From Piromyces finnis finn (Eukaryota > Fungi > Neocallimastigomycota): a stretch of DNA of 64,000 nt. The stretch is taken from contig MCFH01000035.1 in NCBI GenBank assembly GCA_002104945.1, positions 496,001 to 560,000 on the forward strand. Direction: 5' to 3'. Below, in pieces: positions 28,812 through 31,547 of the stretch (positions are counted from its first letter, which is position 1; each line of letters begins with the position of its first letter). The position numbers and the translations under genes are program-made. The notes under the pieces were generated by a model that saw only the letters and a program-made list of their open reading frames with translations, ran no database searches and had not been told where the DNA came from.

Positions 28812-31547
28812 ATGGAAAAATATCAGGTTTCTATATATAATTAATAATTAAAATTATAAAATTTTGAAGATTCATGAAATTCAAATTAACTTTTTTCCTT
28901 CTTTTTTTTTTTTTTTTACCTAATAAAAATTATTTTATTATATATTTTTAAAAAATGAATCAATATCACCTTATTATATTTAATAACATATAACACTCAA
29001 CATTTCATATAAAATCCTCTATATATTTTAAATACATTTTATTTATATTAATTATTTAATAATAATTTCATTATAAAAAATGGATGAATTATTTTCTCTT
29101 AAATGATGTTTTATTAATATTTTCAATAATTTATATATGCTGGAACTATCCATATACTAATAATATCAATTACATTATATTGTCATTTTTATCATATATA
29201 TTGAATATTTATTAATTGTTTATAAATATATATTGATTATCAAATAAAATTTAAATATAACAAAAATTAAAATTAAAATGACCTGATTCAAATTCTTATA
29301 AACAAAAATAAAAAACGAAAATAAATAAACATTGGAACCTACACTGTAAAATAAACAAAAAAAAAAAAAAAAAGAAAATTGAAAAAATTGGTGAAGGTAC
29401 CTATGGTGTTGTATATAAAGCACAAAATAAAGAGACTGGTGATATAGTAGCATTAAAAAGAGTAATAAAATATTTTTTTTTATTTTTGAATTGAACTACT
29501 TTTTAATTTTTTTTTTTTTAATACTTATTTAGTAGGAAATTCTAACTATTTTAATTACATTTTTCAATTTTATTTTCTAATAGATTCGTCTTGATAATGA
29601 AGAAGAAGTAATTATATTAAAGATTTTCAATACACATTTCCTTTAAATTACTATTATTATTATTATTATTATTATTATATTTTTTTTTTTTTTTTTTTTT
29701 AAGAAAAAAAAACCTATGTGTATAATATTAAATCATTGATATGTTATTATTCATTCTTACTTAACACAATTTTTAGGGAGTTCCATGTACAGGTAAAACA
29801 TATTATTATTGTTATTAGTATGTATATATATATATGTATATCAAAGTATAAATTAGTAAAATATCTAATTAATAATATTAATAATACAAATAGCTATTAG
29901 AGAAATCTCACTATTGAAGGAATTGAAACATCCTAGTATTGTAAAGTAAGCTTATTGCTATATTTGCTATATTTAATAATAATAAAATTTTATTAAATAC
30001 AATATTTACATAGTTTCAAACAAAATTTTTCAAGTAAAAATATTCAATAATTATTTACTTTTTTATATATAAATTTTTTTTATTTAATTACAAAAATAAA
30101 GGCTATATGATGTAATACATACAGAAAAAAAGTTGACATTGGTTTTTGAATACATGGATTTAGACTTAAAGAAATCTTTAGATATGAATAGTGGTGAAAT
30201 GGATCCTTACACTATGAAAGTAAGATATATAAATATTAGATGATATATATAAAAGAAAATTAAATATTAATAATAATAACAAGTAAATAAATAAATATTT
30301 AAAATATACATCTCTTAATATTACTATTATATTTTTTATTGTTGCTATACTAATATTGTTAATATTATTATTGTATTTCAAAATTTAAAACTTTAAATTT
30401 CAAAAAATATAAAAGAAATTAATGTATCAATTATTAGAAGGAATTGCTTATTGCCATGAACATAGAGTATTACATAGAGATTTAAAACCACAAGTAAATA
30501 ATCTTAAATTGTTTATGATTATATCAGTTTGGAAAATTGATAATATAATTAATTTCAACAAATATATAAAAATAATAATGAATAACAATTTTTTATTTTA
30601 ATATAATACCATCTCGATATTTTATAGAATTTATTAATAAATAAGGTATTTTATACTTATTTACATGATATATATTTTAATAAATAAAAAAAAAAAAAAA
30701 ATCAAACTATAATAAAATACTAATTGTATTGTCTATTAAATACATGATTATATAAATTCAAACATTAGAGAGGTGATTTAAAACTTGGTGATTTCGGTTT
30801 AGCTAGAGCCTTTGGTGTACCTGTTAGAAGCTATTCAAATGAAGTAAATATCGAATTCATATTTATATTAACATATTTATAAAAAGTCAATTTTTTATCT
30901 CTTATACCTTTTATTAATTTATAATATATTTAAACTTATTCATGATAATATAGGTCGTAACGCTATGGTAAATAGATATTCTCATTATTTTTTTATATGA
31001 AAACTATATAAATGTTATAAAAATATTTATATTTAATTGCATATATTGCATATACCTATAAAGGTATAGAGCTCCGGATGTTTTAATGGGGTCTAGACAA
31101 TATTCAACATCAATTGATCTATGGTCATTAGGATGTATTATGGCTGGTGAATATAATAATAATAATAATTGTTCAATAATAGAAATAATAACTTAAAATA
31201 TATCAACAATATTAAATAAAATAATTATTAATTTTTTTAATTATTTAATATATATATATATATATATAAGAAATGGCTACTGGTAGACCATTATTTTGTG
31301 GAAGTTCTATTAGAGATCAACTTATGAAAATATTTAAATATCCTTTTTTTTTTCAATTAATAGTACTATTATAATTAAATAAAAACAGATAATTATTAAA
31401 AAAAGTCGCTTTTCAGTATTTATTATTTTCTTTAACTTTTATTTTCGTTCTTACAGTATTAGGTACACCAGATACTACCGTATGGCCTAAGGTTACAGAA
31501 TTGCCGGATTGGAGGGTAAAATTTTAAAGTGGCATTAATTTTCTTTT

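Follow-up and report, generated by a model that had tools for sequence, protein, structure and literature searches.

A probable U12-type AT-AC intron at a conserved codon of a CDK5/Pho85-type kinase gene in Piromyces finnis and other early-diverging fungi

Introduction

The locus described here raises the question of whether positions 31338-31454 of a window of Piromyces finnis DNA form an intron of the minor (U12-type) class, and whether that intron is shared with other fungi and with animals. A preliminary description, made from the letters alone, had read the interval as an AT-AC intron in a fungal kinase gene, apparently at the site of the mammalian CDK5 AT-AC intron. The locus lies in a window of 64,000 nucleotides (G000:C162:496001-560000), which is the whole stretch of DNA that was analysed, and positions given without a locus label refer to this window.

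Both minor introns and the snRNAs of the minor spliceosome have already been reported for P. finnis (Larue and Roy, 2023; PMC10639083), and 129 minor introns were described in Neocallimastix californiae (Olthof et al., 2024; PMC11347168), so that the novelty implied by the preliminary description did not hold. Because minor splicing was already published for P. finnis, the map of where minor splicing exists is unchanged by the present locus. CDK5 is mentioned neither in the main texts nor in the supplements of these two papers, and the intron analysed here was very probably among the introns counted earlier for P. finnis. With the published early-fungal minor introns (Rhizophagus irregularis, Basidiobolus meristosporus, N. 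californiae and P. finnis) it has in common the intron class, the species group and the snRNA set. What is new, as far as could be found, is the spread of this intron across fungi and the finding that the public protein model of P. finnis misplaces it; proof from transcripts that the AT-AC junction is used in Neocallimastix is also added here.

Materials and Methods

The P. finnis gene was searched exon by exon, while full-length comparisons were made with database proteins (ORX46464.1, listed as P0258, and others). Loci of other organisms were fetched from the matches to exon 13, from those to the chytrid orthologue P0007 in a word search, and by alignment of exon pieces; when exon 13 was compared with the representative library, most matches were ORF fragments of a single exon, and a few were mis-modelled proteins. 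The numbers of exons 11 and 12 follow a 14-exon table that omits the first exon of the gene. The search for minor snRNAs covered the P. finnis genome (56.46 Mb in 232 contigs) and was judged by the Rfam gathering cut-offs. The scan of the window for introns of the [AG]TATCCT type used a branch-motif pattern too strict to flag 31338-31454 itself.

Results

The interval is located in a gene predicted to encode a CDK5/Pho85-type kinase, of which it is intron 12 of 14 (Table 1). The other 13 introns are of the GT-AG kind, with 5' ends of the GTAAxx type. The 14 tabulated exons, counted from 29381, amount to 849 nt up to the stop; the first of them (exon 2 of 15) starts at 29375, directly after the AG at 29373-29374, and not at the tabulated 29381, and addition of these 6 bases and of the 15 bases of the first exon gives 870 nt. 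All exon boundaries were matched by an intron-free, collinear Neocallimastix transcript contig. The P. finnis protein falls into a 90% cluster together with the orthologues of Anaeromyces robustus and Neocallimastix sp. 'constans', all of 289 residues, and is about 95% identical to expressed orthologues. Its assignment to the CDK5/Pho85 group is based on the matches of exon 5, which were best to Pho85 and CDK5 (37-38 bits), followed by the Plasmodium CDK PfPK5 (36.4) and CDK2 (26-28), on the name CDK5 that the orthologues carry in their source records, and on the comparison of the Basidiobolus orthologue with solved structures, where human CDK5 was the best match, only about 4 bits above other CDKs. 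Two other introns of the gene have an unusual composition: the first (28828-29374; 547 nt) contains a run of about 19 A immediately ahead of its AG, which is an uncommon setting for an acceptor, and that at 31516-31590 consists mostly of a (TTTA)n repeat.

Table 1. Positions and main properties of the kinase gene, its putative minor intron, the orthologous introns and the candidate minor snRNAs.
Feature	Source	Position	Strand	Size or score	Basis or remarks
CDK5/Pho85-type kinase gene	P. finnis window	28813-31865	+	15 exons, 289 codons plus stop	ORX46464.1
First exon, ATGGAAAAATATCAG/gt	P. finnis window	28813-28827	+		sequence and Neocallimastix transcript
Exon 11 (table numbering)	P. finnis window	31271-31337	+		ends ...AAA ATA TTT AA, first two lysine-codon bases
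Probable U12-type AT-AC intron, phase 2	P. finnis window	31338-31454	+	117 nt	sequence, frame, orthologues
5' splice site ATATCCTTT (U11/U6atac recognition motif)	P. finnis window	31338-31346	+		direct reading
Branch-site motif TTCTTTAAC (best branch box)	P. finnis window	31428-31436	+	19 nt to 3' end	presumed branch A 31435
3' terminal AC	P. finnis window	31453-31454	+		TTAC/AG in all four gut-fungus sequences
Exon 12 (table numbering)	P. finnis window	31455-31515	+		begins A GTA TTA GGT ACA CCA, lysine third base
AT-AC intron, identical codon and phase	Anaeromyces robustus			126 nt	best branch box TTCCTTAAC, 34 nt to 3' end
AT-AC intron, identical codon and phase	Neocallimastix sp. 'constans'			153 nt	best branch box (Neocallimastix) TACCTTAAC, 32 nt to 3' end
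AT-AC intron, identical codon and phase	metagenome relative			3' half only	best branch box 31 nt to 3' end
AT-AC intron, identical codon and phase	Acaulospora colombiana			80 nt	
AT-AC intron, identical codon and phase	Basidiobolus meristosporus			69 nt	
AT-AC intron, identical codon and phase	Rhizophagus irregularis				
AT-AC intron, identical codon and phase	Umbelopsis vinacea				
Regions of the gut-fungus branch spacing	window and gut-fungus loci	window 31428-31454; L014 3380-3513; L015 3344-3504; L006 91-132			
Intron-free sites	Spizellomyces, Entophlyctis, Gonapodya	L010 2403-2441; L008 4895-4930; L020 near 1434			
U12	P. finnis genome			66.6 bits, cut-off 53	GUAAGGA box intact; 5' region UUGCCUCAAAUUAAUGAGUAAGGAU
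U6atac	P. finnis genome	L002 1501-1649 = G000:C112:211500-211648		52.1 bits, cut-off 33	
U11 candidate	P. finnis genome	L003 1490-1615 (G000:C152:317514-317628)		38.2 bits, just below cut-off 39	
U4atac candidate	P. finnis genome			49.2 bits, just below cut-off 53	

Direct reading of the interval gave ATATCCTTTT as its opening and TTAC as its closing letters, and thus the matched terminal dinucleotides AT...AC of the U12 type; the coordinates and motifs first proposed agreed exactly with the letters and with the exon table. The consensus [A/G]TATCCTT is matched from the first intron base, in register with the sole frame-preserving junction (31337/31455). Joining the exons here completes a split lysine codon (phase 2), restores IFK-VLGTP with K216-V217, and would produce an mRNA reading TTTAAAGTATTAGG. 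Near the 3' end there is a TCCTTAAC-like box complementary to GUAAGGA of U12, which differs from TTCCTTAAC by one C-to-T change, where a G-U pair with the P. finnis U12 is still possible; the 5' region of U12 that forms the duplex with it is UGAGUAAGGAU. The spacing from the presumed branch A to the intron end comes close to the upper limit of the common 10-20 nt range.

In the window, with a base composition of about 20% GC, the 9-mer of the 5' splice site was found 5 times, as compared to 3.2 expected by chance. This count is near chance. The significance of the motif comes from its exact register with the junction that keeps both frame and conserved residues, from the loss of frame when its donor is combined with an AG acceptor, and from its recurrence at the same codon in other genomes. 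The scan detected no other intron of the [AG]TATCCT type in the window, all matching sites lying inside continuous coding sequence, which, within the strict branch pattern used, agrees with the earlier reading of this intron as the only one of its kind there. We put the probability that 31338-31454 is a U12-type AT-AC intron of the P. finnis CDK5/Pho85-type kinase gene at about 0.9. According to the established model of U12-dependent splicing, the motif at the first intron base would be recognised by U11 and later by U6atac, U12 would pair with TTCTTTAAC so that the branch adenosine, presumably A 31435, is bulged out, and cleavage past the terminal AC would join ...TTTAA to AGTATTAGG. Splicing of the intron in P. 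finnis itself would then depend on the minor spliceosome.

The preliminary description had implied a working minor-spliceosome machinery, and candidates for U11, U12, U4atac and U6atac were all found in the P. finnis genome, two of them below the cut-off. The U11 candidate contains the highly conserved stem-loop stretch GUGCGGAAUCGAUAUCAAGAGAUUUCG and an Sm site, and its remainder is strongly conserved. The U4atac locus is also scored as U4 by cmscan (39.7 bits); the major U4 is a separate gene (89.9 bits). At its 5' end the U4atac candidate carries CGUCCUUAUCU, which can pair without mismatch with AGAUAAGGACG of U6atac in a stem of 11 bp; the major U4 does not have this complementarity. Both strands of the stem are changed relative to the Rfam consensus in a compensatory manner. 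This covariation provides good evidence that the two candidates would form a working pair. Among the minor-specific proteins, a family search for PDCD7 gave no match in the P. finnis genome, and a match to zf-U11-48K was discarded because it is a lone CHHC finger exon, indistinguishable from fingers of the TRM13 or GTSF1 type. A SNORD14-like box C/D snoRNA (L003 2162-2325, minus strand; 52 bits, cut-off 64) was observed about 550 nt from the U11 candidate.

The snRNA segments predicted to contact the 5' splice site are altered. The U6atac box for this pairing reads GAGCCGAGAGA, compared to the consensus GAAAGGAGAGA, and the change from the consensus AAGGAGAGA to GCCGAGAGA weakens the textbook pairing to positions +5 to +8 of the 5' splice site. 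The genome contains a single U6atac-like gene and no second copy with a canonical box. Where human U11 has AAAAAGGG with GGG, the U11 candidate shows single Gs only, its 5' region reading CCAAAAGAAAAGUUUU. Textbook base pairing with the CC of ATATCC would therefore be weakened, although the CC itself is kept.

Comparison with other loci revealed AT-AC introns at the identical codon and in the identical phase in seven other genomes. Wherever the 5' end was readable, these introns carried the same ATATCCTTT. The intron bodies could not be aligned among these genomes, while the 5' site and a CCTTAAC-like box are kept across four phyla. The presence of the intron at the same codon and in the same phase in Neocallimastigomycota, Glomeromycotina, Mucoromycotina and Basidiobolus indicates that it predates their split. 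By this comparison the CDK5 AT-AC intron is older than the separation of chytrid-grade, zoopagomycete and mucoromycete fungi, and it was lost several times: Spizellomyces punctatus, Entophlyctis luteolus, Gonapodya prolifera and a Logan contig have uninterrupted coding sequence here. Spizellomyces is reported to keep minor splicing (PMC10639083), and the loss of the CDK5 intron there is thus specific to this intron.

Direct evidence for the use of the AT-AC junction came from Neocallimastix, a sister genus of Piromyces. Two JGI contigs (Ga0307465_102489 and Ga0411639_03361) contain the complete ORF of 289 codons, free of all 14 introns, and both are 100% identical to the genomic exons of Neocallimastix sp. 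'constans'. Over the intron site they read TTTAA/AGTT, which shows that ATATCC...CTTAC was removed; the sole ambiguity of this junction is a slide of 1 nt, which would give the meaningless ends TA-CA. The Neocallimastix transcript contig to which the P. finnis exons were compared (L012 280-2474) carries two intron-free ORFs on the same strand, 125 nt apart, one for the CDK5-like kinase and the other for a peptidase C13 (GPI-transamidase-like) protein of 399 residues. A peptidase C13 gene is absent directly downstream of the kinase in the P. finnis window, and the two-ORF contig could stem from transcription that reads through, from transcripts that overlap or from a chimeric assembly.

At one residue the public protein model disagrees with the AT-AC reading. 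ORX46464.1 of P. finnis reads KIFKLLGTP, with L217 where the AT-AC junction gives V217, and on the window DNA this implies a junction 2 nt further downstream at both ends, an intron at 31340-31456 with AT...AG ends, and an mRNA reading TTTAAATTATTAGG. The shift is the only way to obtain KIFKLLGTP and leaves length and frame unchanged. That this annotation is right, with K216-L217, is nevertheless very unlikely, since cleavage would then no longer be in register with the ATATCC motif, and the AT-AC junction is proven by the transcripts of Neocallimastix, where the flanking sequence is almost the same. Residue 217 is V or I in all ten other members of the 90% cluster, transcript-derived ORFs included, and for this reason the public junction was judged to be misplaced by 2 nt. 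According to the authors of intronIC, annotation that is off register beside strong minor 5' motifs is a known artefact that their tool corrects. The junction of ORX46464.1 is thus probably an annotation error that produced one wrong residue.

Two further readings would deny the interval its U12 character or its function, and both are even less probable. Removal by the major spliceosome, whether the interval is an uncommon U2-type AT-AC intron or is excised by way of a cryptic GT-AG pair, would suit the AG that directly follows the terminal AC (TTAC/AG) and the T-rich 3' part of the interval, a feature also seen in the U2-type neighbour introns. Nevertheless, the U12 consensus at the 5' end is unlike the GTAAxx of the 13 neighbouring introns, and none of the in-frame GT/GC-AG pairs nearby keeps IFK-VLGTP, each deleting or inserting conserved residues. 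Combination of the ATATCC donor with the AG acceptor breaks the frame, and the motif pair is kept in four phyla while the remainder of the intron diverges. These observations make a U2-type origin highly improbable. Least credible of all is a chance motif in an AT-rich genome, within a pseudogene or a mis-assembled stretch; the near-chance frequency of the 9-mer in the window would agree with it, but the 15 exons close the 289-codon frame without stops, the protein remains close to its expressed orthologues, and the motif stands in exact register at the orthologous site of the seven other genomes.

Discussion

The U12-type reading of 31338-31454 leads to the comparison with animals. A minor intron in CDK5 is documented for both mouse and human (PMC5224493; PMC12332006), in line with the preliminary description. 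The forward primer of a published retained-intron assay sits in the exon for the CDK5 segment CIFAELA, some 27 codons upstream of R217, a location that agrees with the proposed site but does not prove it; the exact mammalian exon boundary of the minor intron was not found in the literature searched. The Basidiobolus orthologue aligned end to end with human CDK5 (425 bits), and in this alignment the fungal intron site falls between human R217 and L218, just before LLGTP. The fungal intron thus belongs to the same gene family as the minor intron of mouse and human CDK5 and splits the codon aligned with human R217, whereas the flanking residues differ, being K/V in the fungus and R/L in human. 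We consider it likely that the mammalian CDK5 minor intron lies at this very codon, and the fungal intron and the animal CDK5 minor intron are probably the same intron.

The protein word search with P0007 listed no animal CDK5 among its best 120 matches, all of which were from fungi and dictyostelids; test scores indicated that queries with the Dictyostelium, Basidiobolus or Rozella protein would place more than 100 fungal proteins ahead of human CDK5. Human CDK5 presumably has an isoform in UniProt without residues 105-136, a segment that would match two fungal GT-AG intron positions. This isoform would suggest a broad conservation of CDK5 intron positions.

Canonical AT-AC introns of the U12 type, such as that of human P120/NOP2, have the branch box about 11-13 nt from the 3' end. 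The P. finnis intron resembles them in its ATATCCTTT 5' end, its TCCTTAAC-like box, its terminal AC and its non-zero phase, but differs in the position of the box, which is 19 nt from the 3' end in P. finnis and 31-34 nt in the sister genera. In the orthologues of Acaulospora, Basidiobolus and Rhizophagus the spacing was 11-13 nt, as compared to 19-34 nt in the gut fungi, and in Umbelopsis it depends on the motif chosen. The degenerate box of P. finnis is nearer to the 3' end than the CCTTAAC box common to the other three gut fungi. Another difference from canonical AT-AC systems is that the U6atac and U11 boxes for the 5' splice site are altered in P. finnis. It is conceivable, but on balance doubtful, that Neocallimastigomycota have remodelled minor-spliceosome recognition, with a lineage-wide relaxation of the branch-to-3'-end spacing and altered U6atac and U11 pairing. 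The matched series of orthologues can be used for asking whether gut fungi tolerate long distances between branch and 3' end.

The CDK5 intron offers a clean marker, verified by comparison: at a single codon of a cell-cycle/neuronal-type kinase gene it has been retained in four or more fungal phyla and, very probably, in animals as well. It adds a well-documented case to the known pattern of minor introns with great age, stable positions and piecemeal loss. On the practical side, it flags the 2-nt junction error in ORX46464.1 and, in Acaulospora colombiana, a gene model broken by the AT-AC intron. This model, CAG8506424.1 (L007 4001-6636), skips the exon before the AT-AC intron, reads CIFA-GTPTEE and is also fused to a mitochondrial-carrier gene; its structure is a gene-prediction artefact around the minor intron. 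Several models of Funneliformis and Paraglomus are likewise short, with 255-266 residues.
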